Shown in pieces: positions 8,388 through 57,662 of a stretch of 64,000 bases of DNA. Within the stretch, counting starts at the first letter, position 1; each line of letters starts with the position of its first letter. This DNA is from Camelus dromedarius (lineage: Eukaryota): positions 9,114,001-9,178,000 of the forward strand of contig NC_087458.1 in the NCBI RefSeq assembly GCF_036321535.1, given 5' to 3'. The notes beneath the pieces were generated by a model. That model saw only the letters and a list, made by a program, of their open reading frames with translations. It made no database searches and was not told the DNA's origin. The translations under genes and the position numbers were made by a program.

Positions 8388-9332
8388 TTAATGTTGTGGC
8401 AGAGAAATTGTTCTTCCCACAACTCTTTGAAGAGCTGATTTGAACTCTTTATTTCTCAAGCTGTAAACCACTGGATTGAACAATGGAGTTAGGATAGTAT
8501 AAGATACTGATATGAGAGCATCCTGGCTTGAGGAGTAGTTGGACTTAATCCTTAAGTAGATAAAGGAGGCACAGCCATAATGGACAATGACAACAATGAG
8601 GTGAGAAGCACAGGTAGAGAAAGCTTTGTACCTGCCTAATGTGGAAGGAAATTGAAGTATGGCAGAGATGATGTGAACATAGGATACCAAAATCAGTAAC
8701 AGGGGGATAACCAAGACCAATGCACAGAGCGTGATAATGACAATCTGACAAAAGTGGGTATGGTGAGATGCCACCTTGAGAACAGGAGAAATGTCACAGA
8801 AGAAGTGGTGTAGTTGGTTGGAGGAGTGGAAGGGCAGGTGAAACACCATGGATGTGATGATCTGTGCAACAGTAAAGCCACAGAAACAGGCAGCAGCCAC
8901 TAGTCCCACACACACCCCATGCCCCATGAGCACCGTGTAGCGCAGAGGGTTACAGATGGCCACGTAGCGATCATAACCCATGGCTGCCAGCAGGAAGGAG
9001 TGGGAGCAGCCTAGGAAGAGGAAGGTGAACATCTGGATGGCACAGCCCAGGAAGGAGATGGTCTTCTTCTGGGCCAGCAGGTCCACCAGCATCTTGGGTA
9101 CAATGACGAAGGTGTAGCAAGTCTCAGAGCAGGAGAGTACAGCAAGGAAGAAGTACATGGGGGTGTGCAGGGCTCTGTCCAGCACAATGGTGGAAATGAT
9201 GACGGCGTTGGTGCCCAGAGTGAACAGGTAGACGAGCAGGAAGACAACAAAGAGCAGCCGCTGCAGCCCGGCTAGAGAGGAGAAGCCGAGGAAGACAAAC
9301 TCTCTCACCAGCGTCTCATTGACCCACTCCAT
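8388..9332 (-). CDS. OR10K2: Olfactory receptor 10K2 orthologue, intact single coding exon, 314 aa (start taken as MEWVNET at 9332, not the upstream ORF start at 9395)
   Basis: OR motifs LHTPMYFFL, MGYDRYVAIC, HFFCD, KAFSTCASHL and PVVYSLRN. C-terminal half (AQIITS..., QIVI, ILQFPSTLGR, SSQDALISV) matches recalled human OR10K2. Pyrimidine tract plus AG acceptor at 9359-9358 just upstream. Confidence 0.9.
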   Translation of the reverse strand: MEWVNETLVREFVFLGFSSLAGLQRLLFVVFLLVYLFTLGTNAVIISTIVLDRALHTPMYFFLAVLSCSETCYTFVIVPKMLVDLLAQKKTISFLGCAIQMFTFLFLGCSHSFLLAAMGYDRYVAICNPLRYTVLMGHGVCVGLVAAACFCGFTVAQIITSMVFHLPFHSSNQLHHFFCDISPVLKVASHHTHFCQIVIITLCALVLVIPLLLILVSYVHIISAILQFPSTLGRYKAFSTCASHLIVVIVHYGCASFIYLRIKSNYSSSQDALISVSYTILTPLFNPVVYSLRNKEFKSALQRVVGRTISLPQH

Positions 9333-9829
9333 GGAAGGTACAGCTTCAGGAGACAGTCTGAGAGAGAGGAGAAGATGGTACTGAGGAAAATCCATTAAAA
9401 TTATAGAATCACAGGAAATTAATAACTACAAGACATGTGTTCTCAGATTTTGAGTTCTGCCTCATTCCTCCTCTTCCTGGTTTTGTAAGACATGAAGAAA
9501 TATCAAAAATTGTGCAAAGTGTGCGTCCAAGTTTGAGTCGCCACAGTATTTATAACACCATAGACAAAATGTTCTCGACACTTCTCAGATTCAACTCTCC
9601 CTTCATCTCACTTCCCAGGATGGGGCTGATGTTAAAATTTTCAGCCTCTCTAGGCTCTGCAATGCTAGTCCATTTGGTTTTACTGTCTTCACATCCTCCC
9701 ATGTTCCTACAGTTGCAAAATAAATTATCTGAATGCACTACATTTATATATATAACTCTCTAAATAACTTTATATATACTCTGCAATAGCTTTTCATTAT
9801 CATTCTCCTTATACCCACACCTTAGTTTA

Positions 9830-10380
9830 ATCTTTCCATAACCTACACCTACATTCTATCCAACTCTGCTTGCCTTACTTCCTGGTGTGGATCACCAGTT
9901 CCACCTTCTTAAACTCTCATTAAGGTGACTCTTTGCTTCTGTATCTGTATTCTGTTCCCAAATCTGGAAGAAGTTATCCAAGATGGAATACTTCTATACC
10001 TCCTCCAATGCCTATCTCAGAGTCTTTCCTCCAGCAGAGAGAACACAGTCTTTCTTCAGGACTCTTGCCCATTTTCATCAATTTTCTTAACTCCTACAGA
10101 AATCACATTATGGAGATCTTTCCCATCACCAGTCTCACATTTCTCCAGTCCATCCTACTCCTGATGCCAGCCAGACTAATCTTCTGAAATATAATTGTAT
10201 CCTATCACTCCCCTCCTCAAAAATTTTGCTCATAGCTATAGCATAAAGTTCAAAGTCTTTATGGTCTGTGAGCTCTTGTTTTGAGAATTAAACTGTGTCC
10301 ATGATCATCTGTAGACATTTATGGGATGCATCACGGTTGTGTAATATGTTGCATCCTTCCTTGCCTCTGTTCTTTGCTCA
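9830..10380 (+). mobile_element. L2 fragment
   Basis: ccagccagactaatcttctgaaa...tatcactcccctcctcaaaa...gcataaagttcaaagtc resembles the L2 3' region. Confidence 0.5.
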
Positions 10381-11194
10381 TGTTACTTTGTTACCCACTT
10401 TTTATTTACAAATATTTTACGTTACTCATACTATTATATTCAACGTTATTATCTTAACTACTGTTAATAACAAAAATCAGGATCATCATACTCTTCCTTA
10501 GATGAGAACCACAAAATCAAGACTATCAGTCACCAGCCAACAAGGATCAAACAGTTGTAAATGCAACCATGTGTCAGGCGCTAGGTATGTGTTAAAGATA
10601 CATGTAAAAGATTTGGTCCAAGGCCTCAAGCTGCTCACATTTCAAAGGTGAGGCATATTCAAAAGAAGACATTATTAAAAAATAATGTGGTTGAACTGAT
10701 AGATGTGCACTTGCAATTGTGAGAAAATTGAGGAAACAATTTTTTTTTGTACATCCTTGGAAAAATATTTTTGCATTTCTGGTTTTCTTGACATCTGTTA
10801 TAGAGATGTTGAACTAAAGCATTCTTGGAAAAATGTCATGAGACCGGCCACTATTTAGTTTCTACAAGTTTCATGCAGATGTGGAAAGACTCCAGGTAAC
10901 CACAGTTCCATCTCCTGGCTCCTGGGGAGGGCAGTCTTGTCCACGGTGTTTCCTGCTGCCACTCAAACCATGTAAAAGGGACAAATCTGCTCTTCCTTTA
11001 TCTTATTCCCCTGATTCTTTGCTCAGTGCCTAACACGAGGATTTTTATTGCCCAGAAGATACATTTATTACTAATATACTGTTATCTTTCTAATTCCAGG
11101 GTCCTTAATTCTCAGGACTAAGTAATACATTTCTACATTAGTAATCTTGACTTTTACCCTTACAAACACATGTAAAGGTGAGCAATGTAGGAAT

Positions 11195-11405
11195 AAGATG
11201 AATTTTGAACTTAGATAGATGTGATCTTTAATCCTGACTCTGATGTGTTCTTGTGGTTAGATCTTAAACTCTCTAAGCCCCATTTTCTTATTTGTATGGT
11301 GAAAAAAGTAATCGCAGACCCCTAGGGCTATAGTGAAAATTAATTGAAAATCATGTGTACGAGAGAGGCTAATTCAACACATAGTGAGTGCTCGATAAAT
11401 ACTTC
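11195..11405 (+). mobile_element. MIR SINE
   Basis: aatcctgactctg...ctctaagccccattttcttatttgt...cacatagtgagtgctcgataaata. Confidence 0.65.
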
Positions 11406-12234
11406 CCTTTAATTACTTCACTGTTGTTCTATGGGGACTGGGAGCAGAAATATTCTCATCAACAATACAATGAGGATTTAACTCATAGGAAGTTGCTGAA
11501 GCTGCCTTTTCTGCACTTTCCCGGGGTGCTGCTTGGCATTACGTGGAGTCCTGCTCTGCCCTGGAAGGGAGGCAAGGGTTACTGATCTTGAAGTTCCATG
11601 CAAGTTCTGTGGTATTTGGTTCTCTGTAGTCAGTCACCCAGGCAGGTTATCTGCACCTGGGAGAAAGCAAGGGAGTTTTCCTAAATTTTCTATTTTGAGG
11701 GAGAGGGTAGTATAGGATAAACTTAGAAGATAAAATGATAGTTAAATTTAGTCACATACAAAGAAAAACTTAGAGGTTTCTTATTATGGATGCTTTATAC
11801 TTACCAATAATGCATATTTTGTGTATGTTTTAATCTAGATATTTAGGTATCAAAGTCAACAATTTATTGAGTACTCAAAGAAACTGAACATCAGACAGTA
11901 CTTGGATCAGAAGCTCCAAGACCAGAAAGCAGCCGAGTAGATGTGTTAGCCACAGAACCGAGGTCTTCTGTTTTTCAGATGAATGCGATTCCCACAGTCT
12001 TGTGCCGCCTCCTGAAGAGATTTATGGTGTTGTTATAGCTGCTACCCCTGCGTTCTCCTCCAGAGTCTGTTCTCTATGCCCTTGTGCTAATGTTTCTGTC
12101 TCTGATTTTATGTTCCGAAAAGGCAGTTTCTGTGTCTTTATGTCTGCCAACTACAATTATTTTCAGAGTACTCACAATTCTCAGACTTGTATTAGATATT
12201 GTAATCTTTTTCTCGATGTCACTTTAAAAAGATT

Positions 12235-12453
12235 NNNNNNNNNNNNNNNNNNNNNNNNNNNNNNNNNNNNNNNNNNNNNNNNNNNNNNNNNNNNNNNNNN
12301 NNNNNNNNNNNNNNNNNNNNNNNNNNNNNNNNNNNNNNNNNNNNNNNNNNNNNNNNNNNNNNNNNNNNNNNNNNNNNNNNNNNNNNNNNNNNNNNNNNNN
12401 NNNNNNNNNNNNNNNNNNNNNNNNNNNNNNNNNNNNNNNNNNNNNNNNNNNNN
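12235..12453. other. Assembly gap (N run)
   Basis: N bases. Confidence 1.
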
Positions 12454-12900
12454 ATTTCATTTATGTGTGGCATCTAAAATAATCAGTTCAGAGGAGGAGA
12501 AAGTAGAATGGTGGCTGCCAGCGCCTGGGCCAAGGGAGAGAGGAAGTGGCTGTTCACTGGGTATAAGGTTTCAGTTACACAAGGCGAATACTTCGTAGAT
12601 GCCTGCCTACAACATTTTGCCTGTAGTTAACAATAGGTAATTGTGTACCTGAACATTCATTAAGAGGGCAGATCTCATAAAGAATAGATAAACAACAAGG
12701 TCCTACTGTATAGCACAGGGAACTACGTTCAATAGCTTATAGTAACCCATAATGAAAAAGAATATGATAAAGAATATATACACGTATAACTGCATCACCA
12801 TGCTTTATACCAGAAACTAATGCAACATTGTAAATCAACTGTACTTCAGTTAAAAAGAAGGTCATCTCATGTTAAATGTTCTTACTATAATGAAACACAA
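12454..12900 (+). mobile_element. Old L1MA/MB 3' end with a nested younger L1 3' end (12679-12854)
   Basis: The younger terminus (aacaacaaggtcctactgtatagcacagggaac...acattgtaaatcaactgtacttcag) splits the old terminus; degenerate TSD at 12662-12678 and 12855-12870. Confidence 0.7.
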
Positions 12901-13156
12901 GATTTGGTGATTAAAATATTGTTAAGTGCACTGTTGAATTAAATCAGAACCAAGACAGTGTCTACGTAAATTTAGGAAGAGCAATGAGTCAGTTCATCTA
13001 CAATATGTATAAAATTTATACGCATAGTTTCATAAAAATGCACTTTAAAGTTTAATTAGGCCTGATTAACAACATTTGGAGTCCACATTCTTGATTGTGG
13101 CTGTCTCTGTCTTTTACTGGCACTGCACCGGAACGGACCCATCACCCTTCTCTGTC

Positions 13157-13830
13157 TCTTACCTGAGCTGTGAAGGGAGGGTCCTGCTGGGGGATAGATG
13201 TTCACTCTCGTTCCCTGTCCACTGTCCAGTTTCTCACTGCTGTGGCTGCTCAGTCCAACATGGATGTCTGTTACTCATAGAGGGGCTCACTCCCACCTGC
13301 CTCTCCCTCCCCCTGAGAGAAGCCAAAAGCGCCGAGGCTACAGGGACAGAATCCAATTTGAAATGGAAAAGGAGGAAGGGTCAAAATGGGCCCGATGCTA
13401 CTGATCTTTACTCAGGGGTAGGCATGTGATGATGTTCTGGGGACTTAGACCCCAACTCAAATCAAACAGAGCTAATTTCTTTCTGACATTTTGTACCAAT
13501 TGGCCGAAGACCACAAGTCACATCTAATAGTGACCACAGAGCAGCTGGAACTTTCACTGCATTTATTGGTAGCGGGCAGTTCTTCTGTGGGTCTCCTGAT
13601 GCCAGAGTCATCACCATGGAGATGTTGCACTGGGTTTAATTAACAACTGAGTTGATTGCGGAAAGTAGGGACAAGTCATCAAATGCCAAATTACTCCAAA
13701 TTGGGCCCACGCATGAGGGCTTGGGGAGCGGAAGGCTCTAAGCCCCTCTCAGATGCAGCAATTTTAGAAAATTTGACTAATTTTAAGTTGATTTGTCAAT
13801 TTCATGTTACCAAAGGGATGAAAAGGAAAT
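13157..13830 (-). promoter_or_regulatory. Probable OR10K2 5' non-coding exon and promoter region
   Basis: Consensus donor CAG|GTAAGA on the minus strand (intron starts 13162), 3.8 kb upstream of the acceptor at 9358; TAATTA and O/E-like sites at about 13635-13820. Confidence 0.35.
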
Positions 13831-14504
13831 TGCACATATAATTCATGGTCAGTATGTGTAAAACATGTCTGTTCAGTTAAAAACGTGCTTTTGCATTTAT
13901 ACTTAGAACTGTTGTTTTCTGTTAGGTTGAGAGGACCGATGAAGCAATGTTGCTTTCTATTGTGAAGGCCGAAAGGTGACTCATTTCACCATTAACTACC
14001 AAGTTCATTTCTTTCAACCTCTCTATTCCATTATCCAGAAACTAACATAGTGTATTGTTATACACAGGAGATACTAAATAAACATGTGCTGAATGTTGGC
14101 AAATAAATGGTCCCAGACAATGTTTCCCCAGTAATATAAATCACCTCTTAGTTTGAACAAAAATGTGTATTTCTTTTCTAATTTCCAAAATTTCTGATTT
14201 CCACTTGCCTTGTGACTAAGCTAGGAATGAAGGTGATTTCACCATCACGTGGTGTCAATGGATACTGAAGACCCCTGACAATGGCTTGGTGCAGAGTAAG
14301 AATTCATCACATATCTGATAGATGAAGAAGTAATGATCCTGAGACCCAAAGTGAGAACAAAGGAAGAACAAAAAATAATTGAGAACAAGAAATAATACTC
14401 ACGAAGAAATAAGAAGTAAGAAGAGTAGAATTTAATCTAGTTGAATCTAAATGCTGAACAGCTTTGTGTTATTGATATCCATCATTTATTCCAAACTCAC
14501 AGCA

Positions 14505-15320
14505 GTTTTTTAAAAAACCAACTTCATCGAGTTATGATTGACATGGAAGAAGATGTACATATTTAATGTATACAACTTGTTGAGTTTGATGTAAGTATAT
14601 ATCCAAGAAACAATCACCACCATCAAAGCCATAGACATATGCATTATTTCCCAAAGTTTTATCCAGTCAACTTTGTTATTATTAATTACTATTATTATTA
14701 ACTGTGATAAGAAAACTTAACATAAGATCTATCCTCTTGGCGAATTTTAAGCATACAGCACAGTAGTTTTACCTCTAAGTACTATGCTGTATAGTGCATC
14801 TCCAGAACTTCTCTTGCATAATTTAAACTTTATACCCTTTAACCAACATCTCCATATTTGCCTCTCTCCCCAGCCCCTGGAAACCACCATTCTACTATAT
14901 GCTTCTGTGACTTTGACTATTTTAGATTCCACGTATAAGAAGGCCAACCAATATTTGTCTTTCTGTGTCTGGGTTACTTCACTTAGTGTCTTGAGGTTCA
15001 CTCATATTGTGGCAAATGGCAGACTTTCCTTCTTTTTCAAGGCTGAATAATATTTTGTTATGTGTATATACCACATTTTCTTTATACATTTCCTATGATT
15101 TGTACCATTAGGTTGTTTTCATATCTTGGTTGTTGTGAATGGTGTTGCAATGAATGTGGAGATATAGGTGTTACTTTGTGATTCTGATTTCAAACTCTTT
15201 TGATAAATGCCAAGAAATGGGATATCCAGATCACATGGTGGTTCTATTTTTAATTTCTTGAAGAACTTCTGTACTGTTTTCCCTAATGACTATACCAACT
15301 TATATTCCCACCAACAGCAT
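14505..15320 (-). mobile_element. L1MA/MB 3' end
   Basis: cccagcccctggaaaccaccattctac...tagattccacgtataag...gggatatccagatcacatggtggttctatttttaatttc. Confidence 0.8.
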
Positions 15321-15334
15321 GCCAACATTGTGGG

Positions 15335-15610
15335 TTTGGTATTGGTATTTCTACTAGCCAATGAAACATGGGCAGAAGGGATAGCTCACTAGTTCCAAGC
15401 CTTGGCCAAAAGAAGCACTGTGGGTTTTCTGCTATCACCATAGGATGAGCTCTCCATGTTTTTAAGTCTGGGATCTAGACTAGAAATAGCTGGTACAAAT
15501 CTGATACCAATGTATTGAAAGGGGGCCAAACCCAAGAGATATACAGCTTGAAGCAGACTTGTCATGCTAAATTCAGCTTAGATCAGTCAAACCTAAAGCA
15601 ACTTGCCCAC
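15335..15610. mobile_element. MLT1-type LTR fragment
   Basis: gccaatgaaacatgggcagaag...agttccaagccttggcc. Confidence 0.5.
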
Positions 15611-15667
15611 ACAGCAAGAAGTATTTTTTTCTTGTGGTTAAAAAAAAAACAAAACACTTAACATAAA

Positions 15668-15841
15668 NNNNNNNNNNNNNNNNNNNNNNNNNNNNNNNNN
15701 NNNNNNNNNNNNNNNNNNNNNNNNNNNNNNNNNNNNNNNNNNNNNNNNNNNNNNNNNNNNNNNNNNNNNNNNNNNNNNNNNNNNNNNNNNNNNNNNNNNN
15801 NNNNNNNNNNNNNNNNNNNNNNNNNNNNNNNNNNNNNNNNN
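15668..15841. other. Assembly gap (N run)
   Basis: N bases. Confidence 1.
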
Positions 15842-15844
15842 NTC

Positions 15845-16495
15845 TCTACGCTTTGAGGTGATCTGTTACACAGTAAATATCAAATATGTTTATCTTCAAT
15901 GATGCTAGACTCTACCAAATCATTTTTCAAAGTGGTTGTACCAGTTTATACTCCCACCAGTACTGAATGGGAGTTTCAGTTGCTCCACATCTGCAACAAT
16001 AAGTGAGGGTCAAACATGCTCTCCTTTCCTCAGCTGTTCTCCTTCCACATCCTCCAGATTCTTCCTGGGCAGTGAGGGAAATAAACCTCAGCCTGAAATG
16101 ACGTTGTAACTCATTTTCATTTGAGACATCCTGGTATGTCTGTGTAATTGCATTTGCACTTCCATGATACTAATGAGATTGAACAGCTTTTCACAAGTTA
16201 ATCAGCCAATTGGATTTCTTCTTTTTTTGAAGGTCCTGTTCAATGTGTTGTACATTAGAAAAGAGAGATATCTCTTCTTATTGATTCCAGGAGATTTAAA
16301 CACATTCTGGAAATCAGTATTTAATTAGCGATGTGCATTTCATATATCCTGTCCGACTCTGAAAATTGCATTTCAGTCTTGATGAACAAAAGTTCTTAAT
16401 TATAATGAAGTATAATTTATCAGTCTTCAACTTTCTGAGTAATGCTTTTGTATGCTGTTTAAACAACTTTTGCCTCCACGAGATCAGGTACACTA
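15845..16495 (-). mobile_element. Old L1 fragments abutting the truncated OR pseudogene
   Basis: caaagtggttgtaccagtttatactcccaccag; aattgcatttgcacttccatgatactaatgagattgaac. Confidence 0.65.
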
Positions 16496-17006
16496 AACAC
16501 CAGGACGTTGACAACCACATAGATCAGGAAACCACAGAAGCTTGAGGCTAAAACCAACTGCACGCAGGTGGCATGGCTGACAATGTGTGTGCAGTTAAGA
16601 GGGTTGCAGATGGCAGCATAGTGATCATAGCTCATCAGAGCAATTAAAAACAGTTGGTACAAGCCAAACCCACAAAGAGATTTGTTTTGCAGAACATCCA
16701 AAGAAAGAAATAGTCAGACTTGTGGAAAGCAGGTTGGTCAGCATTTCTTATATCGTGACTGAGGTGTAATAGGTTTCAGAGCAGGAAAGGGCAAAGAGAA
16801 AGAAGAATATAGGCCTGTGCAAAGGTCAATCTAGACAAAAACAAACAAAGACCAGACAAATGATAATCTTTATGGTGACACTGGCCATCAGAGAGATCAG
16901 GCAGATAAGGAGGAAAATAATGAAGAGAAGGCTCTTCAGATGTCCCAAAGTTTGAGAAGCCTATAAGGATGGACTCAGTGATTATGTTCTGGTTCTGTCT
17001 CTCCAA
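16495..17006 (-). pseudogene. OR10-family pseudogene fragment (N-terminus to about TM4), with frameshifts, a stop and 3' truncation
   Basis: Minus-strand pieces read ERQNQNIITESILIGFSNF, LHRPIFFFLFALSCSETYYT(*)EMLTNLL, GLACTNCF and MSYDHYAAICNPL. No ATG; homology ends at an L1 fragment near 16495. Confidence 0.8.
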
Positions 17007-17429
17007 TGGGCACTGGAAAACAGACTTAGACATCCTTACATTGAGAACAAAAAGACTTTGACAAAAGTGAAATGCCTCCATCAAAACCACAAATGTGTTT
17101 TTGTACAAAGCTGATAATAGTGGTATGAAAAAACGAGTAACACAAGTTAAGCACACTGATAAGGGGTTAGGAGAAAAGCAGGAGGCATGAGGAGTGATGA
17201 CATAAGTAAGTTACCAATCAACAATGTCTAAAGAAATTTATCTTTATTTTTGTAAGTTGATTTTATGCTTTGTTTTTGTTCTGATTTGCAGGGAAGACTC
17301 ATATAAATTGCATTAAATCAGGAAGTGATTTTGAGCTCTCCTTGTCTGATCTTACCATTTTATGGAAGAAACTGAGGTTCAAAAATATTAAACCATTTGT
17401 TTAACCCACATGAGTTAGACCAAAGTTAA

Positions 17430-18700
17430 CAGGAATAAAATAATGAAGCTCAGAGAAGAAATCAATCAAATGGAGACTAGAAAAACAATGTAAAAGTCAA
17501 TAAAACTAAAACCTGTTTTAAAAAAAAACTGAACAAAATTGACAAAGCCTTAACTAAAATAAGTAGGGAAAATAAGAAGGCTGAAATAAATAAAATAAAA
17601 AATTAAAGAGGAGACATAACGTATGTGTCAGAATTACAAAACAGACATAAGGGAGTATTATCAACAATTGTGCACCTACAAATTGGATAATTTAGAAGAA
17701 ATTGACAAATTTCTAGAAACATAATCTACCAAAACTGTACCACAGAGAAATAGAAAGCTTAAACAGACCATTAACAGATAAAGAGATTGACCAGAAATCA
17801 AAGATCTACCTACAAAGAAAAGCCCATGACCAAATGGTTTTATGGGTGAATTCTACCAAATATGCAAAGAAGAATTAACACCAATTTGTATGAAGTTTTT
17901 CCAAAAAACAGAACAAGAAGGAACACTTTCAAACATATAAGGCTGACATCACCCTGATACCAAAGCCAGATAAAGACACCAGATAAAATACAGTCCAACA
18001 CCCTTGATGAACATATATGCAAAAACCCTCAACAAAATACTAGGAAACTAAATACAACAGCACATTAAATTTATTACACATGATTATTAAGTGAGGTTTA
18101 ATCTTGAGACACAAGGATGGTTGAGCACATGCAAATTAATCAATGTGCTATGCCACATTAATGAAGGAAAATAAAATAAAGTGCATGATCAAATCAATAG
18201 AGGCAGAAAAAAGTATTTGACAAAGTTCAACATCCAATCATGATTAAAACTCTCACTAAATGAGTATAAGAGAATTTATCTTAACACAGTAAAGTTTACA
18301 TATAAAACCTCTAGAGCTAAATAATGATAAATGGGAGAAAATTGAAAACTTTCTCTCTAAAACTGGGTGCAGTGGGAAGGATACCCACTGTCAACACTCC
18401 TATTCAATGTGGTATCAGGGGTCCTAGCCAGAACAATGAGATAAGCAAAAGAAATAAAATATATCCAAATCAGAAAGGAAAAAGTAAAACTATTCCTATT
18501 TGCAGATGATATAGTCATATATGGAAAACTCTAATGATTCAATCAGAAAGACCGTTAGAACTAGAAAACAAATTTCAGTAAAGCTGCAAGATACAAAATC
18601 AGCACACAAAAATCAGCCACGTTTCTATACATAGACAATGAATTATACAAAAGGGAAATTAAGAAAATGATCTCATTCACAATAGCAGCAGAAAGAATAA
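17430..18700 (+). mobile_element. Degenerate L1 ORF2 (reverse transcriptase region) fragment
   Basis: accaaatggttttatgggtgaattctaccaaa; ccctgataccaaagccagataaagac; ctatttgcagatgatatag (FADD motif region); many stops. Confidence 0.85.
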
Positions 18701-18704
18701 ACTA

Positions 18705-19090
18705 CTGGAATATTATACTTACTGAAATAAGTCAGACAGAAAAAGACAAATCCTGTATGATATCACTTATCTGTAGAACCTAAAAAAATCATATGAATAA
18801 ATGTACATGCAAAATAGAAACAGACCCACAGATGTAGAAGACAAACTTGTGATTATCTAAAGGGAGAGAAAAGTGTAGAGGGGCAATAAGGATATGGGAC
18901 TAACAGATACAAACCACTATATATAAAATAGATAAACAACAAGGATATATTGTATAGCACAGGGAACTATACCCATTATCTTGTAATAACTTACTACAAT
19001 GGGGTATAGTCTGCAAAAATATTGAATCACTATGCTGTACACCTGTAACTAACACAATATTGTAAATCAACTATACTTCAATGAAAAATT
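18705..19090 (+). mobile_element. Younger L1 3' end
   Basis: gtatagcacagggaactatacccattatc...atattgtaaatcaactatacttcaat. Confidence 0.8.
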
Positions 19091-19459
19091 TTAAATAAAT
19101 TAAAATATTTTTAAAAAGAAAAATACCTATTGGCTTTTTCATCAAGAAAGTTGATATACTATATGGGAAACAGTGTGTAATCTGTGGAGCTAAAAACCAA
19201 AAAATTTAGAATAATTGTACTTTTCAAAAATCTACATATTAATTGAAATATTTAACTGTATTTCTTATTCTAAACAATACTCATAAAATGATCTATTTAT
19301 CTATGACTTACAGATCTATACTTTAAGTTTAAATTCTTGTATTAAACAAAACATTTTCAGAAAAATAAAATCAATTCTGTAGCAATAAAAAAAATAGGAT
19401 CAGTTACCCTAGCTAATGTAAAAAGTCCCTTTATGCCTATAAATTATTTGTACAATAGA

Positions 19460-19860
19460 AATGGACTAAAGTGACGAAGGGCAAGCCTCAATTTCTGTTT
19501 TTTGTATTTTCTGATAGAAGCAACACTCCTTTGAAAAGTAACGCATCTAGATTACAAAGCTCAAAATTATGTGAGTCAGTCATTAGGGGTAATATTGGCA
19601 GGAGCCATTTCCATCTCCCCTTACACCAACTTCCAGACCTACATATTCTTGCTACTGGAGGATAGGCACGATGCCTAGTTTGCTGGTTCAGAGTATACAT
19701 GGCCTTGAGTAGGCACACGGGGAGCCATCATGTGTTGTCCCACAAGTAGTGCCCTAACTGAGCCTTCGGTAAGTCTTTTCATTGTTCTGCCAGGACACAT
19801 CCTTCCGAGTGATGGGTACACTGAAGGAGACGGATTTCCCAGTATCATTTACTGAATATT
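19460..19860 (-). mobile_element. ERV-L internal fragment (end of integrase)
   Basis: Minus-strand LLKAMYTLNQ...PPVARI resembles ERV-L LQKAVYALNQ...SPIARI; preceded by a degenerate HH-E...L-K segment. Confidence 0.55.
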
Positions 19861-22391
19861 CACAGTGCTCTTACTGACTTGTGAGGTCAAAGACCACGTT
19901 CCCAACTATACACAGATCATTTTCTGCGCTCTCCTTTCTGTCTCTTTATTTAACTCCTTATGTTCCAGTAGCATGTTCTTTCTATGACTAAGACGTCTTA
20001 CTACTGGGAAGAGTGAGCCCCTATATCACTTATCCTTTTTCAAAAGTGTCTTATTCTTCCAAGTAAACTTTATAAATGTTTAATTTCAGGTTGCCTTCAC
20101 AATTCATGCCAGAGTTTGGATTGGAATTATATTGATTTTGGAGTAGCTTTGATGAAATTGACAACTTTATATACAGTCATTCCAGTAAAAACCATTTGTA
20201 AGGTAACAAGTAATTTATTAATAGAGCTCAACTAGATTTAAGATACTTGTTAAAAATTTAAGTTTTTGCAGAACACCCCAATGTTCCTAATGAGAACTTC
20301 TATAGGCAAAAACCTGAGAAGATAAATTTGTAATGAAACCCTCTTTTGATTCTTATAAACATTAAAGTTGAGAATCACTGGACAGATACATTGGTTTCCT
20401 GACCTAAAATTCAATAAACATTTTCCACTTAGTCTGATGCATTGCAGACTTAATTGTGATTTCTCCTGCAGAATCCATAACAGATGGACTTAATTTCCAA
20501 TGAAGACATGGGCTAATTATGCTTATGGCTTCTAGTCCCCAGGTTCCTCAACTAAGGCTACCTTTGAGAACCTTGCAATGTTATTTTTCCAAAATAAAGT
20601 TGACTTCTAATTAACCCCATGCAGGACAATGTCTCCAGGGCAGTAGATACAGCCTCAGGAGTCCAACAGTCACAGTATATGCTTCTAATATCCACACCCC
20701 ATGTTGGTCACCAGAACTTCTAAAGATGATGACTTTGGCTGGAGACGTTGAAAGTCCTGATGGATAGGGGAGGCTCCTTCTGTTGAGGCAGATGAGAGCT
20801 TCCATCTCGAGGCAGATTCACTCTCTTCTGCTGATATTTCTTCAGGCCCTGACCTTTGGCTTAGAATCTACATTTAAAGGGATCCCAGATACTGAATAGC
20901 TGCTTCTGTCTGAATTGAAAGAAGGAGAGCAATGTAGGTACTTACTGAAGTGGGGATATTGATCTAGTCTGAGGCTCTGTGGGGTCGAGACCTGAGTGAG
21001 GAGTAGTGCTTGTGGACACCTCCCTTTCGACCTCCTTAGAAGATCAGTGACAGCTTTCTGGCCAGTGCCAGGGTTATTAAGAAGGAGAACCAGGGGCTGC
21101 TTTTAACTCCAGGTACTAAAAGTGATTGGGCATCATCCATATAGTTCTCTGAAGTTTTCTTAGTGATCAGACTGGTTCATTTTTACTCCCTGCTAGATTT
21201 TCTTTACTTTTTTTTTTTTTTTTGGATTTTCATGGATTAAATGAAACATATACTAAATCTTCACTTCCTCTCTACTGTGTACTCACGTATGTTTTCAGCT
21301 ACAATTGAAATCTGATACTTAAACTCCATTTTAATATGGCAAATTCAGGATTTTCATGTGTATCTAAGAATACAAAAATTCCTTCTCTTTATTTTCTGAG
21401 GCTGTGTACATAATTTCTCTCAGTTAATTGACTGATGTTTTCCCTGAGAGAAGTATTTGAATATCTCAAAATTTTGCATTTGAAAAATCATAGGTTTGCT
21501 TCCTTTTTGAATAACCAGTACCCTCAAATATTGAGTCACTGTTTAAATCTAAATTATATAAAATTCCTTGGAGCATCTAAGGAATTAGAAAAATAAGGTA
21601 TAGAAATGTCATCTCCAAGGATTATAACATGAATTCCATCCCCAGGTTCTAGAATATCATAAAGGGACTTTGGGGATCATCTGAGTAGAGAATTTTGGAC
21701 TCTTTGAGTTGAAACGTTATTGAGGGTCAATACTCAACTCTTACCCTAAGTCAAAAACGTCTGCAAGATATTACTCAAGGAGCCTCTGCTTAAGTACCTT
21801 CCGTGCATCCTAACAGTTTATTACAGTCACTACCCTGTCACCTAATTTTAAAATAAGGAGACTAAATATCCAAGTTAAGTACCTTGGCCAAAGTCACACA
21901 AAGCTAGACCTAAAATACAGATCTTCTCACTCCAAATGGAGGGATCTTTTCTCTTAGTTTCAAGGCTTGTGGGTATTTGGCTGGAAGATCTTTTTATTCT
22001 TTTGCTGTTATATCTTTCTGTCCATAGTACTGATATGACGCCCTGTGGTGGTCTTGGATGTGTTCTTGGCCAATGGGGGCTGCTTTCTCAGATGAACTGT
22101 GCCACTGGGTCTCCATACACCATGAAAAGGGCAAATATATCAGCCACACCTCATTTAGACTGTAGGGTTATATTAATAGCATGTAGAAAATCCAGTTACC
22201 TGAAGTCAGCTATCCTCATGGGTCTTAATGAAAAATAATCCAAGCTACCTTTTTTTTTTTTTTTTTGGTATTGGCTAGATACAGGCACTCCTTCATAATC
22301 AGATAACTCTAGCTTCTGTGGTCTATAATTCCTGCTCAGTGGAGTGAGAGTATGGTAGGGATTATAGGTGAGTGAGTTGAAAAGAGACACA

Positions 22392-23063
22392 AAAAAATCT
22401 TGGGAAAATGATAAGAAAAAAGAAACTGATCATAAATTCAGATTTCCCCCAGTGTTCTGAAATAGACGGAAATCTCTTTGTCTAGGTGGAGGTGTTACAT
22501 AGGGAAACTGTCTCACTGGTTTGCCTTTTCTTCATATAATTCGTATATTCATGCATATGTATATAATGGGGATATAAATGACATATCCATTCTTTGCATT
22601 TATATGTCGTAGAAATATCTCTGGCTACAGAATGAAAAATTTCTATTATTTGTTTTAAAGGACTATAAAACCAGCATGTGTGAGTATCTTAATATTAACT
22701 TCAAATAATTATACCTACTAAGTTTAGGACCAATTTCTAGTAATGAAGAAAGAATGAAAATTATTATCTCCAAATTCTAAGGATAGATAAAGTGAGTTTC
22801 AGAAATTTTCAATCATTTAACTTAGAGTCTAGGAAACCAAAGTTTGCTACTATAAATGCAAAGAATGGATATGTCATGTATATCCCCATTATATACATAT
22901 GTATGAATATACTAATTATATGAAGAAAAGGCAAACCAATGAGACAGGTTCCCTATATAACACCTCCACCTAGACAAAGAGATTTCCGTCTGTTTCAAAA
23001 CACTAGGGGAAATCTGAATTTATGATCAGTTTCTTTTTTCTTATCATTTTCCCAAGATTTTTT
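22392..23063. repeat. Long inverted repeat: arms 22392-22604 and 22851-23063 (213 bp each), 246-bp spacer
   Basis: Hand alignment of the left arm against the reverse complement of the right arm gives 9 mismatches in 213 and no gaps. Confidence 0.97.
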
Positions 23064-24343
23064 CTAATGCAAAACCAAGAAATTCTGGTAGCAGATGCAG
23101 ATAATTCCTCAACACAAAATAATGTAAAAGTATTTAAATATACTGGAAAGTATATAAATGAAGACTGGATACAGCCTATAACTACTAAATGATTTTGCAT
23201 CCAGGGAACACAGACTTTACTTCTTAGGCTTAGGCAGCTGGGAAATACACCCATGAAAAAAAGCATGTGATATAAGGTCTAAAAATGACTTTAGAAATAG
23301 TTTTTTTTTCTAGTAGTTTGCAAACTGTGTTTAGCAGAAGAATATTCATATTCAAAAGGAACCTTATTAGAAGAACAAGTTGTAAAAGATATAAAGCCTA
23401 TGATTTGTGTCAGGGGAAAACTGCCCAGTTGTCACATTCTCTGTCACTCTCTGAGACAAGCTCTTGGACATTTTTGCAAAACTCTGTTTCTCTGAGATTC
23501 TTTGAGGTGTTTCAGAATGGGAAAAGTGAGAAGGGTTGCAACATGCATGTTAATGAGACTCTTTCTAATACTCTGATGACTCTTCTCTTCCTAAAAGAAG
23601 GAGAACGTTTTCTTTTAAGTAATGCTATCTTCTGTTCCATCCTTGGCTCACTATTCTAGTTTGCAGAACTTGAGTAATGTTTCAAACTGGTTTCAGCACT
23701 AAAGGGTGGTTTTTTCCTTATTGTTTTGGGTATCGATGTAAAATTTTTGTAATGAATCGTTGACAGAAGATATATAATATTTTTACCACGTATTTTAGCA
23801 TATAATAAGTCATCAATAAACACAAATCCTCTTACACTTTTGCTTAGAGTTTATCTAATTCTTCCTCTCCCTTCTCATTTTCTGGTTGATAATCTGAAGT
23901 TCACATGCTGTGTCTGAGCACTACTCATTTCTTTTATTCCATGCTCTGATCAAGTTCAGATAGCTGAAGTTAACCATTATTCTCAGTTTTGGAGAGCTAG
24001 TTGCCTTGGGCTTGTAGTGAGCAAGAAAAACACAATAATTCATTAGATAATTCATAAGTAAGATACAAGGGAAACCTAATAGCCAAGTGCTTAATCCTCT
24101 GCTAGAGAGAGAACATTTTCTGAGGCTCAGACAAAGCCTCCTAACTGGTCGCCAGTTATCCTATTCTGTGTTTAGCCTTAATTCTTATTTCAGCAGATGT
24201 TTCTTGGAGGGAATGAATGAGTTCCACCAAACGTTTAGAAATGCCTGCCAGCTGCAGACTTTGCGCTGAGTTTCCCGTGCATTTCTCCCTCCCTGGAGCC
24301 GGGCCTCTGGCTCTGGCTCTGGCTCTCCTGTGCAGCAGTGACC

Positions 24344-25285
24344 ATGGAGTGGGTCAATGAGACGCTGGTGAGAGAGTTTGTCTTCCTCGGCTTCTCCTCT
24401 CTAGCCGGGCTGCAGCGGCTGCTCTTTGTTGTCTTCCTGCTCGTCTACCTGTTCACTCTGGGCACCAACGCCGTCATCATTTCCACCATTGTGCTGGACA
24501 GAGCCCTGCACACCCCCATGTACTTCTTCCTTGCTGTACTCTCCTGCTCTGAGACTTGCTACACCTTCGTCATTGTACCCAAGATGCTGGTGGACCTGCT
24601 GGCCCAGAAGAAGACCATCTCCTTCCTGGGCTGTGCCATCCAGATGTTCACCTTCCTCTTCCTAGGCTGCTCCCACTCCTTCCTGCTGGCAGCCATGGGT
24701 TATGATCGCTACGTGGCCATCTGTAACCCTCTGCGCTACACGGTGCTCATGGGGCACGGGGTGTGTGTGGGACTAGTGGCTGCTGCCTGTTTCTGTGGCT
24801 TCACTGTCTCGTTGGTCACCACCTCGCTGGTATTTCGCCTGCCCTTCCACTCCTCCAACCAGCTCCATCACTTCTTCTGTGACATCTCTCCTGTCCTCAA
24901 GCTGGCATCTCATCGTTCTCGCCTCAGTCAGTTGGTCATATTCATGCTCGGTGTGTTTGTCTTGGTTATTCCACTGTTACTTATCATGGTCTCCTATGTC
25001 CGCATCATCTCTGCCGTTCTAAAAATTCCTTCTGCCGTTGGAAGATACAAAGCCTTCTCTACCTGTGCCTCCCATCTCATTGTGGTAACTGTTCATTATG
25101 GTTGTGCCTCTTTCATTTACTTAAGGCCCAAATCTAATTACTCTTCAAGTCAGGACACTCTAATATCAGTGTCCTACACCATCCTCACTCCTCTGTTCAA
25201 TCCGATGATTTACAGTCTAAGAAATAAGGAATTCAAATCAGCCCTTCGAAGAGCAATCATCCAGACTTCACATCCTGTTAATTAA
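24344..25285 (+). CDS. OR10K1: Olfactory receptor 10K1 orthologue, intact, 313 aa
   Basis: Full set of OR motifs. C-terminal half (VSLVTTSLVF, SQLVIFMLGVF, KIPSAVGRYK, SSQDTLISV) matches recalled human OR10K1. Divergent orientation to OR10K2; first ATG at 24344. Confidence 0.9.
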   Translation: MEWVNETLVREFVFLGFSSLAGLQRLLFVVFLLVYLFTLGTNAVIISTIVLDRALHTPMYFFLAVLSCSETCYTFVIVPKMLVDLLAQKKTISFLGCAIQMFTFLFLGCSHSFLLAAMGYDRYVAICNPLRYTVLMGHGVCVGLVAAACFCGFTVSLVTTSLVFRLPFHSSNQLHHFFCDISPVLKLASHRSRLSQLVIFMLGVFVLVIPLLLIMVSYVRIISAVLKIPSAVGRYKAFSTCASHLIVVTVHYGCASFIYLRPKSNYSSSQDTLISVSYTILTPLFNPMIYSLRNKEFKSALRRAIIQTSHPVN

Positions 25286-25299
25286 AGAGCCAATTTTTA

Positions 25300-25445
25300 A
25301 CTGTTCAGTTAACTGTATGCCTGTTATGTGCCAGGGAGCATGTGTGCTTTCACACGTTTTCTCATTTACATGTCGAACACACACTGTAACATAAGGATCT
25401 TTAACACATGAGGAGAATGAGACTCAAAGAAGTTAAGACATTCTG
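25300..25445 (-). mobile_element. MIR fragment
   Basis: ctgttatgtgccaggg...gaggagaatgagactcaaagaagttaag. Confidence 0.55.
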
Positions 25446-28624: not shown

Positions 28625-28758
28625 NNNNNNNNNNNNNNNNNNNNNNNNNNNNNNNNNNNNNNNNNNNNNNNNNNNNNNNNNNNNNNNNNNNNNNNNNNNN
28701 NNNNNNNNNNNNNNNNNNNNNNNNNNNNNNNNNNNNNNNNNNNNNNNNNNNNNNNNNN
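28625..28758. other. Assembly gap (N run)
   Basis: N bases. Confidence 1.
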
Positions 28759-33655: not shown

Positions 33656-34597
33656 ATGGCCAATTCCTCCTGCGTTACCGAGTTCCTCCTGCTGGGTTTC
33701 TCCAGCCTTGGGGAATTGCAGCGTGTCCTCTTTGTGGTCTTTCTCTGCCTCTATTTGATCATCCTGAGTGGAAACCTCACTATCATCTCAGTCATCTGCT
33801 TGGATCACGGCCTCCACACACCCATGTACTTCTTTCTAGGTGTCCTTTCCACCTCTGAGACCTTCTACACAATTGTTATCCTGCCCAAGATGCTTATCAA
33901 TCTGCTCTCTGTACTCAGGACACTCTCCTTCATGAGTTGTGTCTTCCAGATGTACTTCTTCCTTGGCTTTGCTGTCACCAATTGCCTGCTTCTGGGAGTG
34001 ATGGGCTATGATCGCTATGCTGCCATCTGTCAGCCTTTGCACTACGCCATTCTCATGAGCTGGAGGGTATGTGGGCAACTGGCAGTGACTTGTATTCTTG
34101 GTGGTTTTATAGTATCTCTGGTGGGAACAACTTTGGTCTTTAGCCTCCCTTTCTGTGGCTCCAACAAGGTCAATCATTACTTTTGTGATATTTCAGCAGT
34201 CATCCGTCTCGCCTGTGCTGACACCTACATCAATGAACTGATCATCTTTATCTGTGGGGTCTTGGTGCTTGTTGTGCCTTTGATCTTCATCTGCATCTCT
34301 TATGGATTTATTGTCTCCACTGTCCTGAAGATCTCATCAGCTGAAGGCAAGCGGAAAGCATTCTCCACCTGTGCCTCTCATCTCATCGTGGTCATTGTTC
34401 ACTACGGCTGTGCGTCCTCTGTCTACCTGCGACCCTCAGCCCAGTATACAACAGGCACAGACAGGCTGGTGACAGTGACTTACACCGTCATCACCCCACT
34501 GTTGAACCCCATGGTATACAGCCTCAGGAACAGAGATGTACAGCTGGCCATTTGGAAAATGATTAGGAAGACTGGTTTTTCTGTTAAGTCTTTATAA
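33656..34597 (+). CDS. Olfactory receptor of the OR10R subfamily (OR10R2-like; exact orthology unresolved), intact, 313 aa from first ATG (MANSSCVTEF)
   Basis: LHTPMYFFLG, LSTSETFYT, FAVTNCLLLGVMGYDRYAAIC, NKVNHYFCDISAV, DRLVTVTYT, PMVYSLRN are OR10R-type; position between OR10K1 and OR6Y1 fits. Confidence 0.85.
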   Translation: MANSSCVTEFLLLGFSSLGELQRVLFVVFLCLYLIILSGNLTIISVICLDHGLHTPMYFFLGVLSTSETFYTIVILPKMLINLLSVLRTLSFMSCVFQMYFFLGFAVTNCLLLGVMGYDRYAAICQPLHYAILMSWRVCGQLAVTCILGGFIVSLVGTTLVFSLPFCGSNKVNHYFCDISAVIRLACADTYINELIIFICGVLVLVVPLIFICISYGFIVSTVLKISSAEGKRKAFSTCASHLIVVIVHYGCASSVYLRPSAQYTTGTDRLVTVTYTVITPLLNPMVYSLRNRDVQLAIWKMIRKTGFSVKSL

Positions 34598-47385: not shown

Positions 47386-48363
47386 TTAATTAACCCAAGC
47401 CCCATCTTCCCTGGGTCCCCTTCTTTTGCAAAGTATGGTCTTCTTGAGTGCTGCCTTTACTTCACGGTTTCTCAGGCAGTAAATAATGGGGTTGAGGAGT
47501 GGGACAATGACAGTGTAGAGCACAGACACCAACTTGTTGGAACTGTAGGCATACATAAGCTTAGGGCGGGTGTAAGTGAACAGAGTCGTGGAATAGAAGA
47601 GAATTACAACTGTCAGGTGAGAGGCACAGGTGGAAAATGCCTTTTGACGTCCCTGAGCAGAAGGGATCCTGAGGATGGTGGTGAGAATGGTGGTGTAAGA
47701 TGCTACCACTACACAAAGGGGAACAGCAATGACCATGAGGGCCAGGAAGAAGTCCACTAGCTCAGCCCGTGAGGAGTCCTCACAGGAGACATTGAGAAGG
47801 GGAGAAATATCACAGAAGTAGTGATTGATATGAGGCGTGCCACAGTAGTGGAGTCGAGCTATGAAAACCATCTTAATCATGGCAGTTATAAGTCCACAGA
47901 ACCAGCATCCCCCAGCCAGTGTGCCACAAAGCTGTTTGGTCATGATGACGGGGTACCGAAGTGGATTGCATATGGCTACGTAGCGGTCAAAGGCCATGAC
48001 GGCGAGGAGGATGTACTCGGTGCAGACAAAGGTCACAAAGAAGTAAAGCTGAGTCATGCAGCCATTGAAGGAAATGGTCTTGCTGTGGCTGAGGAAGTCT
48101 CCCAGCATCCTGGGGCTGATGACGGTGACATACCACATCTCCAGGAAAGAGAGGTTGCTCAGGAAGAAGTACATGGGCTTGTGTAACTGCCCGTCACTGC
48201 GAATGGCTAGGATGATTAGAAAGTTCTCCAGAAGGGTGAGCAGGTAGGTTGCCAGGAAAACAAAGAAGAGGAGCAGCTGAAAGGCTGGCGGTGTTGGAAA
48301 TCCCAGAAGAATGAAATGTGTTGTCACTGTATGGTTATCTCCTTCCAGAACCATGGTGATCAT
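47386..48363 (-). CDS. OR6Y1: Olfactory receptor 6Y1, intact, 325 aa
   Basis: DNHTVTT, SDGQLHKPMYFFL, TFVCTEYILL, MAFDRYVAIC, RPKLMYAY, PIIYCLRN; length and sequence match recalled human OR6Y1. Confidence 0.92.
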   Translation of the reverse strand: MITMVLEGDNHTVTTHFILLGFPTPPAFQLLLFFVFLATYLLTLLENFLIILAIRSDGQLHKPMYFFLSNLSFLEMWYVTVISPRMLGDFLSHSKTISFNGCMTQLYFFVTFVCTEYILLAVMAFDRYVAICNPLRYPVIMTKQLCGTLAGGCWFCGLITAMIKMVFIARLHYCGTPHINHYFCDISPLLNVSCEDSSRAELVDFFLALMVIAVPLCVVVASYTTILTTILRIPSAQGRQKAFSTCASHLTVVILFYSTTLFTYTRPKLMYAYSSNKLVSVLYTVIVPLLNPIIYCLRNREVKAALKKTILCKRRGPREDGAWVN

Positions 48364-56053: not shown

Positions 56054-57007
56054 TCAATCTGGGACACTCCTGGGACAATGGCATCTAGCCAGCACTGTCT
56101 TCCTGAGGGCATCCTTCACCTCCTTGTTCCTCAGGCAGTAGATGGCTGGATTGAGGAATGGTACAATGACAGTATAGAGCACGGAGATGACCTTGTTGTG
56201 GTTGAAGGTGTACATGGCCCGGGGCCGTGCATAGGTAAAGAGCGTGGAAGAGTAGTAGATCACAACCACTGCCAGGTGAGAGGCGCACGTGGAGAAGGCT
56301 TTGTGGCGTCCCTGGGCAGTAGGAATCCTCAGGATGGCTGCAATTATGGCAGCATACGATGAAACCACAACTAACAGAGGGAGGAGAATCATCACCAGGG
56401 CCAAGAGGAAGTCTACCAGCTCTGCTTGTTCCTTGTCAGAGCAGGTGAGGTTAAGCAGTGGGGAAATATCACAGAAAAAGTGGTTGATGATGTTAGGTCC
56501 ACAGTAGGACAGTCGGGAAATGAAAAGAAGCTTCATCATGGAGCTGAAGAAGCCACTGCCCCAAGAGGATGCAGCAAGGCGAGTGGCCATGCTGGAAGGC
56601 ATGAGACTAGGATAACGAAGGGGTTCACAGATGGCCAGGTAGCGGTCATAGGCCATGACGGCTAACAGGACACATTCGGTGCAGGCTAAGGCAATGAAGA
56701 AATAGAGTTGAGTCATGCAACCTACAAAGGAGACTCTACTGTCCAGGATAAGAAATGCTCCCAAGAGTCGGGGAACTGTGACATTGATGTACCATAGCTC
56801 CAGGACGGAGAGATGGCCAAGGAAAAAGTACATTGGGCGATGAAGGCTTGGAGTGAGCCAGATGGTGGAAATGATGAGTGCATTCTCCAATAACGTCAAC
56901 AAATAAATTGCAAGGAAGAGGGCAAAGAGGAGCAGCTGGATGGGTGGAGAGGTAGGGAAGCCCACCAAAACAAACTCCGCTATGTGGTCTCCACTCAAAT
57001 TTCTCAT
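56054..57007 (-). CDS. OR6P1: Olfactory receptor 6P1, intact, 317 aa (start MRNLSG at 57007)
   Basis: MRNLSG, LHRPMYFFLGHLS, MAYDRYLAIC, SDKEQAELVDFLL, RPRAMYTFNHNK; strong acceptor (ttactttttcag) at 57030-57029 lies inside the longer ORF call. Confidence 0.92.
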   Translation of the reverse strand: MRNLSGDHIAEFVLVGFPTSPPIQLLLFALFLAIYLLTLLENALIISTIWLTPSLHRPMYFFLGHLSVLELWYINVTVPRLLGAFLILDSRVSFVGCMTQLYFFIALACTECVLLAVMAYDRYLAICEPLRYPSLMPSSMATRLAASSWGSGFFSSMMKLLFISRLSYCGPNIINHFFCDISPLLNLTCSDKEQAELVDFLLALVMILLPLLVVVSSYAAIIAAILRIPTAQGRHKAFSTCASHLAVVVIYYSSTLFTYARPRAMYTFNHNKVISVLYTVIVPFLNPAIYCLRNKEVKDALRKTVLARCHCPRSVPD

Positions 57008-57662
57008 CGTCTCCGACCAGTTGATTCCCTGAAAAAGTAACAAGAAGAGCGAGATGCTAAAAGACAGATGGATCAAATGCTGACATCCTCAGATTGCAAT
57101 CTTGTGAAGATGCTTAGTGGCATAATATCAATTACTGTTACATCATTTTGTTCCTTCACTTTGTTGTGTCATCTCTCACCTCAAGGGAAAAGCTCTCAGA
57201 CTTGAAGATCATACTCAATAACTTGGCCATTGTAACTACAGTGGGTATTTTATAAATGCTTGCTGAGTGGTTTCAGAACAAGTCTTAATATTTCGATTTT
57301 TGTTTCCTTATCTATGGAATGCTCTTCTTTCACTTTCCACAAACTCCTAAACTCCATAGAATCTTTACTCGGTATTTGTTGAGTGAATGGGTAAAAGAAG
57401 GAGTGATAGCAAGCTGGAGCCTGAGGACATACCTCTCAGAGGAAACTGAGTTTAGAAGAAGCAGTAGCTTAAAGATAGTACTTGAGCTATAGTGCAAAGT
57501 AGCATGGGAAGAGGGAGATTGATTTGGGAAGCATTTATTCACAGTTGGAGAAATAATTCAATATAGAAAAGAAAATGGAGCTCTGCTCCAGAAATTTTTC
57601 ACTCATTTTTATAAGCATTTTTGAGTACATTTTTGTGCTAGAATTAGGTTGTCCCATTCCCG

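Follow-up and report, generated by a model that had tools for sequence, protein, structure and literature searches.

How do two neighboring genes come to have the same first half and different second halves? The olfactory receptor (OR) genes OR10K2 and OR10K1 of the dromedary camel pose this question within a stretch of 64,000 nucleotides (nt) (Camelus dromedarius, NCBI RefSeq assembly GCF_036321535.1, contig NC_087458.1, positions 9,114,001 to 9,178,000 of the forward strand), which we call the window and whose own numbering is used throughout. The two genes, abbreviated here as K2 and K1, are positioned head to head. An earlier interpretation made from the letters of the window (the sequence-only reading) had attributed their near-identical N-terminal halves to gene conversion acting, probably repeatedly, on one half of each gene. 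The analyses presented below make it very probable that the 5′ halves of OR10K2 and OR10K1 were homogenized by interlocus gene conversion, in at least three layers of events.

The shared 5′ tract of OR10K2 and OR10K1 and its borders

K2 is encoded on the minus strand (8391..9332; 314 amino acids (aa), intact open reading frame (ORF), stop codon within 8391-8393) and K1 on the plus strand (24344..25285; 313 aa, intact ORF). The unique spacer between them (9335..24341) is 15,007 nt long and includes two masked runs of N. All comparisons among K2, K1, and a third copy described below (K1b) were made on assembled sequences, and scripted analyses of K2 cover coding nt 1-864 (aa 1-288). Ungapped comparison of the two coding sequences revealed no difference within nt 1-413. 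The sole difference in nt 1-458 is located at nt 414 (T at 8919 in K2, C at 24757 in K1) and is synonymous within a His codon; nt 415-458 are again identical, and nt 459 is the next position that differs. Identity begins 2 nt 5′ of the ATG (9334/24342), and farther 5′ the two loci match at chance level, with 5-10 of every 30 positions in common. The K2 arm of the conversion tract, comprising these 2 nt and coding nt 1-458, therefore spans 8875..9334 on the minus strand, and the K1 arm, which departs from it only by the C at 24757, spans 24342..24801 on the plus strand.

Downstream of the tract the genes are clearly distinct. They differ at 88 of 406 positions in nt 459-864 (21.7%) versus 1 of 458 within the tract (Fisher p=3e-30). 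The paralog-specific 3′ part of K2, as analyzed, covers coding nt 459-865 (8468..8874, minus strand) and encodes the outer end of transmembrane segment 4 (TM4), extracellular loop 2 (ECL2), and TM5-TM7; that of K1 (24802..25253, plus strand) is ∼78-80% homologous to K2 until coding nt ∼910, where the homology fades. The two proteins are the same over 155 aa, and A156 in place of S156 is the first mismatch. The sequence-only reading had described the 457 matches in 458 nt with a 413-nt exact run and one synonymous His difference, the otherwise unrelated 5′ flanks, and the 155 common residues followed by distinct 3′ halves; each of these was reproduced by the ungapped comparison.

A repeat search returned the pair as one inverted repeat of 912 nt at 89% identity (8423-9334 / 24342-25253), with arms 15,007 nt apart. 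The longest exact match between the genes is 24-25 nt in the 3′ half versus 413 nt in the 5′ half. The probability of finding at most one difference in 458 nt is 3e-47 at the 3′-half rate and 7e-15 to 2e-21 at the 5′-half K1/K2 divergence of buffalo and minke whale, and identity of the 5′ segments by chance is excluded. A structure model of low confidence (pLDDT, predicted local distance difference test, of 50) contains seven long helices (residues 21-51, 57-88, 94-127, 138-165, 193-226, 231-259, and 272-293) followed by helix 8. This model would place the residue 155/156 border in the outer part of TM4 and not beyond TM4.

Half-gene trees and a permutation test support interlocus conversion

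Synonymous divergence (dS, synonymous substitutions per synonymous site) between K1 and K2 is 0.017 in the 5′ half and 1.00 in the 3′ half of the dromedary genes. The corresponding values are 0.035 and 1.00 in alpaca, 0.026-0.036 and 1.04 in Camelus ferus, 0.17 and 1.30 in buffalo, and 0.29 and 1.32 in minke whale. Purifying selection or codon constraint on TM1-TM4 might be offered as an explanation that needs no sequence exchange, and the N-half protein is indeed more conserved than the C-half in all mammals examined. Constraint alone is nevertheless ruled out because synonymous sites have been homogenized along with the rest. Moreover, the buffalo and minke whale orthologs differ from the camel genes by 8.5-10.5% in the same segment (nt 1-458), and K1 and K2 have lineage-specific substitutions in common in many lineages. 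The probability that we assign to constraint without exchange is negligible.

In a nucleotide tree of nt 459-864, the sequences resolve into a K1 clade and a K2 clade (100/100). In the tree of nt 1-458, all nine camelid K2, K1, and K1b sequences fall into a single clade (100/97); constraining this tree to K2 monophyly lowered the log-likelihood by 37.6 units and was rejected (approximately unbiased test, AU p=2.5e-5). A Sawyer-type (GENECONV-like) test was performed as our own permutation of polymorphic sites with 10,000 permutations. The dromedary pair contains a run of 87 concordant polymorphic sites, a length that was reached in 0 of 10,000 permutations (maximum 29). The C. ferus and alpaca pairs also gave 0/10,000 (P<1e-4) and the buffalo pair 5/10,000 (5e-4), and the test on the minke whale pair was not significant. 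Camelid 5′ halves clustering together across paralogs and 3′ halves clustering by paralog is the outcome predicted by conversion, and these trees together with the significant fragment test on the dromedary pair bear out gene conversion as the interpretation given in the sequence-only reading. In the 5′ half, the GC content at third codon positions (GC3) is 0.75-0.78 for the camelid genes compared with 0.67-0.70 for those of buffalo and minke whale, and in the 3′ half it is 0.50-0.56, values for which the codon usage of TM segments is uncontrolled; subject to that same limit, the direction of the GC3 difference fits that expected of GC-biased conversion.

Both loci retain their position, flanks, and orientation, and dromedary, C. 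ferus, and alpaca have colinear flanks and spacers. This bears on a second alternative, in which reciprocal crossing-over between inverted copies, or a partial duplication, generated chimeric genes. Inversion by crossing-over is permitted by the arrangement of K1 and K2 as inverted repeats with 15 kb between them. Such a crossover, however, would exchange the 5′ halves between the loci and invert the spacer; it would not render the halves identical. A spacer inversion was sought in dromedary, C. ferus, and alpaca and was not found, and each locus keeps its own unrelated upstream sequence to 2 nt before the ATG. We regard crossing-over or partial duplication as extremely unlikely. Because a crossover between inverted copies would flip the spacer, yet the spacer is colinear in the three species, the exchange was non-reciprocal.

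The 3′ border is common to independent camelid assemblies

The dromedary genes were compared with K2, K1, and K1b of C. ferus (L013, L001, and L010) and with K2 and K1b of alpaca (L012 and L008). Differences were counted separately in nt 1-305, 306-458, and 459-864. K2 and K1 differ at 0, 1, and 88 positions, respectively, in dromedary and at 2, 9, and 88 positions in C. ferus. Corresponding counts for K2 and K1b are 2, 3, and 87 in C. ferus and 3, 5, and 89 in alpaca, and those for dromedary and alpaca orthologs are 4, 4, and 8 (K2) and 1, 4, and 9 (K1b). The 458/459 border is common to dromedary, C. ferus, and alpaca, each of which is represented by an independent assembly with private differences. 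Since it is common with alpaca, the border is either older than Camelus or was re-created at the same homology cliff.

The source record of the window (NCBI GCA_036321535.1, CM070332.1) is 100% equal to it on both sides of every N run. The three N runs (12235-12453, 15668-15842, and 28625-28758) are intergenic, located in the spacer and 3′ of K1, and none is inside a gene; therefore no reading frame is affected. The public record traverses each run with precisely equal length. Because the lengths are equal in an otherwise 100% identical record, the N runs are masked stretches and not assembly gaps. GCA_036321535.1 corresponds to mCamDro1.pat, as given in PMC13603154. It is a haplotype-resolved assembly of PacBio HiFi (high-fidelity) reads.

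These properties address the possibility that truly different 5′ halves were collapsed or polished into one consensus. Repeats of the K1/K2 kind do confuse short-read assemblers, as exemplified by the old C. ferus assembly and its chimeric gene model P0001. HiFi reads, on the other hand, are far longer than 458 nt, the N runs are not gaps, and the chromosome-level C. ferus assembly and the alpaca assembly display the same border together with differences of their own. In addition, the 5′ half of C. ferus K1b is identical to that of dromedary K2. An assembly artifact is very unlikely on this evidence, and the concern in the sequence-only reading over consensus collapse in a gapped assembly has little force. 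In the old short-read C. ferus assembly (GCA_000311805.2, L007:9999-11310), 666 nt of K2 are placed at the K1 locus and are followed by K1 from nt 297; this join produces the 399-aa RefSeq-style model P0001, which is an assembly and annotation artifact due to the conversion tract.

A third copy is identical to OR10K1 over 1,625 nt

Two genes on one chromosome encode the exact K1 protein. The second gene, K1b, lies ∼125 kb upstream of K1, outside the window (CM070332.1 record 9013475-9014416), and adjoins a CD1-like gene. K1 and K1b have in common a nested tract that begins 529 nt upstream of the ATG and ends ∼150 nt beyond the stop codon (23814..25438 on the plus strand for K1; L003:9472-11096 for K1b). 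The two copies are identical at 1625/1625 positions of this tract, and its flanks match at 73% and 70%. Weak homology of 71-77% spans at least 12 kb, and the K1/K1b surroundings are an old segmental duplication with a recently overwritten gene core. In C. ferus, the K1/K1b tract has the same 5′ border as in dromedary and a 3′ end ∼80 nt earlier. The C. ferus copies differ at 13 scattered positions upstream, in a patch at nt 306-398, and at nt 673. Because the C. ferus tract carries differences and the dromedary tract none, the dromedary event is the more recent. A short-read Logan contig (L006, from SRR36380801) coincides exactly with 23814-25438 and carries T at nt 414; its ends at the K1/K1b tract borders fit a two-copy exact repeat.

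Probable conversion in successive layers

Individual sites within the tract distinguish events of different age. G at nt 130 (V44) is present in 7/7 Camelus sequences representing three loci, and A is present in alpaca K2 and K1b and in 4/4 outgroup sequences; judged from this distribution, G is a derived, Camelus-specific change that appears to have spread between loci. The derived C at nt 330 is restricted to the three dromedary copies (K2, K1, and K1b) and C. ferus K1b, and C at nt 414 to dromedary K1 and K1b. T at nt 140 (F47) is carried by K2 in C. ferus, C. bactrianus, and alpaca, whereas K2 in the window (position 9193) has the K1-type C (S47). The 5′ half of dromedary K2 is 100% identical to that of C. 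ferus K1b and differs from that of C. ferus K2 at 5 sites, and the 3′ halves of dromedary and C. ferus K2 have 0 differences. The match of the K2 5′ half to C. ferus K1b indicates a probable transfer from K1/K1b to K2 in the dromedary lineage. A second dromedary K2 protein (XP_010975367.2, P0169) retains F47, and the converted K2 state may still be segregating in dromedary. In C. ferus and C. bactrianus, K1 contains a patch with ancestral K1-type states at nt 306-323 (S103 and I108, as in pig and whale K1); because of this patch, the K1 tract of these species is a mosaic.

The alternative to later events is one old conversion in the camelid stem, with the near-identity of the dromedary genes reflecting slow evolution. 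It has in its favor the 458/459 border, which is the same in alpaca and Camelus, and the divergence of the alpaca pair (8 differences) and of C. ferus K2/K1 (11 differences), which is about that of dromedary and alpaca orthologs (5-8). Under this scenario, however, 6.5-9 differences would be expected in the dromedary pair if no events had occurred since the alpaca split, and 1 is observed (Poisson P 0.001-0.011). Nor would a single stem event account for a derived G at nt 130 that is fixed at three loci in Camelus only, for a dromedary K2 that matches C. ferus K1b and not C. ferus K2, or for the complete identity of dromedary K1 and K1b over a tract at which the C. ferus copies differ. A single old event is accordingly considered quite unlikely. 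Recurrent conversion, which the sequence-only reading had proposed, is supported by the nt 130 G at three Camelus loci and by the 5′ half that dromedary K2 and C. ferus K1b have in common.

Several points weigh against conversion in three or more layers. Evidence for later events comes from few sites (nt 130, 140, 330, and 414), and the contrast of 5 versus 0 differences between the halves of dromedary and C. ferus K2 reaches only p=0.06. The alpaca pair is composed of K2 and K1b, with K1b standing in for the gene at the K1 locus. Contig L006 runs unbroken through the K2/K1 borders, for which low coverage of single-copy K2 branches is one possibility. Finally, the polarity of the founding event could not be set at the nucleotide level (2 diagnostic sites in the 5′ half), because the outgroups have themselves been homogenized; in the protein sequences, residues A64, G108, and F151 give a weak hint that K2 may have been the founding donor.

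Half-gene homogenization recurs across mammals

The contrast between halves extends beyond camelids. K1 and K2 diverge by 7.6% in buffalo and 10.7% in minke whale over nt 1-458, compared with 22% over nt 459-864, and in the 5′ half the paralogs within each of these species are as close as orthologs between them. Only 2 sites in nt 1-458 tell K1 from K2 in both outgroup species versus 60 in nt 459-864. Buffalo (Bubalus, L014/L015) K1-like and K2 sequences contain a block of low divergence at coding nt ∼180-540, with 1-3 differences per 60 nt and 7 in nt 421-480. Because this block runs to nt ∼540, beyond the camelid border, it represents an independent tract that ends elsewhere.

Protein trees of 25 mammals were compared in the same manner. 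On the C-half tree (aa 154-288), the K1/K2 label requires 1 change (support 96), and the wallaby genes are on opposite sides of the split. On the N-half tree (aa 1-153), the label requires 19 changes, no better than when shuffled (17.3), and K1 and K2 are sisters within pika (support 95), lemur (97), colugo (99), shrews (98), tenrecs (97), hedgehog (99), beaver (96), and wallaby (92). Within-species identity of the N-half proteins is 84-98%, with dromedary at 100% being the extreme. Residues that separate K1 from K2 across mammals are all located at positions 192, 203-205, 227-228, and 231-232. From these trees, half-gene concerted evolution is an old and general property of OR10K1/OR10K2 that recurs in most mammalian lineages, and the C-terminal halves diverged before the marsupial/placental split.

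The sequence-only reading had regarded the homogenization as lineage-specific, and this part was not borne out: N-halves of the 25 mammals group by species, and the pattern is pan-mammalian. It had cited W3, G23, T72, and A88 as residues of the camel pair that differ from both human genes. Three of these numbers are off by one (G22, T71, and A87), and the residues are not evidence for a lineage-specific event because most artiodactyl K1 and K2 proteins have them. A broader proposal, which we put forward as a tentative possibility and consider doubtful as a whole, is that K1 and K2 constitute a therian-wide pair in which, for more than 100 million years, a shared module from the N-terminus to TM4 would have evolved in concert in almost all lineages while TM5-TM7 were insulated, the border near codons 153-190 being held by selection on pocket residues 192, 203-205, and 227-232.

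Gene assignments and other features of the window

K1 and K2 are predicted class II ORs of family 10, subfamily K, each with a single-exon ORF of ∼313 aa, and are assigned from their sequences to the Pfam family 7tm_4. Homologs of both carry PF13853/PF00001 in a protein search. The closest named relatives of the K1 protein are OR10K1 of C. ferus (98%) and of pig, Moschus, and whale (90-91%), and those of the K2 protein are OR10K2 from pig, whale, hippo, and Tupaia (92-93%); camelid K2 proteins were recovered as members of a pig-led 90% cluster. The exact K2 and K1 proteins are both annotated on GCA_036321535.1.

An in-frame ATG is present at 9395, 63 nt 5′ of the K2 start, and would give a protein of 335 aa (added segment 9333-9395, minus strand); K2 of C. 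bactrianus is annotated at 335 aa (P0162). A splice-acceptor-like motif, ctctctctcag, is located ∼30 nt 5′ of the downstream K2 ATG, and the shared tract starts 2 nt before that ATG. Upstream of K1 by ∼1.3 kb is an inverted repeat with 213-nt arms that are 96% complementary and 246 nt apart (22392-22604 / 22851-23063), which occurs in C. ferus too.

Three further intact OR genes are located in the window. An OR10-family gene (33656-34597, plus strand) has 73% nt identity to an OR just beyond the window start, and two genes on the minus strand (47386-48363 and 56054-57076) are 59% identical to each other. All three are 41-56% identical to K1 and K2, and no conversion tract with K1 or K2 was found in any of them.

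Discussion

We infer both the mechanism of repair and the reason for the stable 3′ border from the pattern of identity. A break in one copy would have been repaired from the other copy as template, resulting in non-reciprocal interlocus conversion between head-to-head genes 15 kb apart. The 5′ limit of the tract coincides with the end of homology 2 nt before the ATG, and the 3′ limit lies at coding nt 458 within TM4, where identity drops to ∼78% and beyond which no exact match longer than ∼25 nt remains. Exact matches of 24-25 nt are too short for efficient homologous repair. Such a homology cliff would be self-maintaining, in that the converted part remains convertible and the diverged part does not, and it was probably started and kept by selection on paralog-specific TM5/TM6 residues. 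The sequence of events probably comprised homogenization in the camelid stem as a first layer, events in the Camelus stem that brought the nt 130 G to K2, K1, and K1b as a second, and very recent dromedary events as a third, in which K1b/K1-type sequence entered K2 and K1 became equal to K1b over 1,625 nt.

The two halves of OR10K genes have different histories, and orthology calls or selection tests on whole coding sequences (CDS) mislead. The K1/K2 locus provides a dated, layered record of conversion from the camelid stem through the Camelus stem to the dromedary, where it is possibly still segregating, and its stable 3′ border is useful for asking if a homology cliff or selection limits conversion tracts. 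As natural chimeras, the K1 and K2 proteins are identical through most of TM4, and any difference in their tuning must reside in ECL2-TM7. If the pair is truly a therian-wide one with a shared module, it would represent a natural domain-swap experiment on which half of the receptor sets tuning. On the practical side, exact repeats of 458 nt and 1,625 nt break short-read assemblies and gene models, of which P0001 is an example.

Gene conversion is listed in PMC1794568 as complicating OR orthology, with citation of Sharon et al. (1999, Genomics 61:24). Conversion in clustered OR genes, as treated there, resembles the K1/K2 case in being a non-reciprocal exchange between paralogs with tracts of a few hundred nt in a single-exon CDS. 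Unlike OR conversion in general, the exchange between K1 and K2 involves the same gene half in most mammalian lineages, since before the therian split, and in camels it involves three loci with events that are datable in layers. No description of gene conversion between OR10K1 and OR10K2 was found in the literature searched. Recurrent partial conversion between neighboring receptor paralogs is described for CCR2/CCR5 and TLR1/TLR6 in PMC8877049 and PMC2077338, respectively, and these pairs resemble K1/K2 in their repeated, independent, partial homogenization across mammalian lineages with another part kept distinct. These pairs differ in belonging to other receptor families, and the converted regions of CCR2/CCR5 include extracellular domains and are discussed in relation to pathogens. 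In K1/K2, conversion covers the protein from its N-terminus up to and including most of TM4 and spares a part that contains TM5/TM6.

A further parallel is provided by the fetal gamma-globin genes HBG1 and HBG2, in which only the 5′ part of the duplicated gene undergoes conversion, up to a sharp, stable 3′ border. In HBG1 and HBG2, which are arranged in tandem, that border is formed by an intronic simple-sequence repeat, whereas in the inverted copies K1 and K2 it is marked by falling identity within a coding exon. The process itself is thus a known one, and OR10K1/OR10K2 is a new example of it, with a pattern that recurs across mammals.

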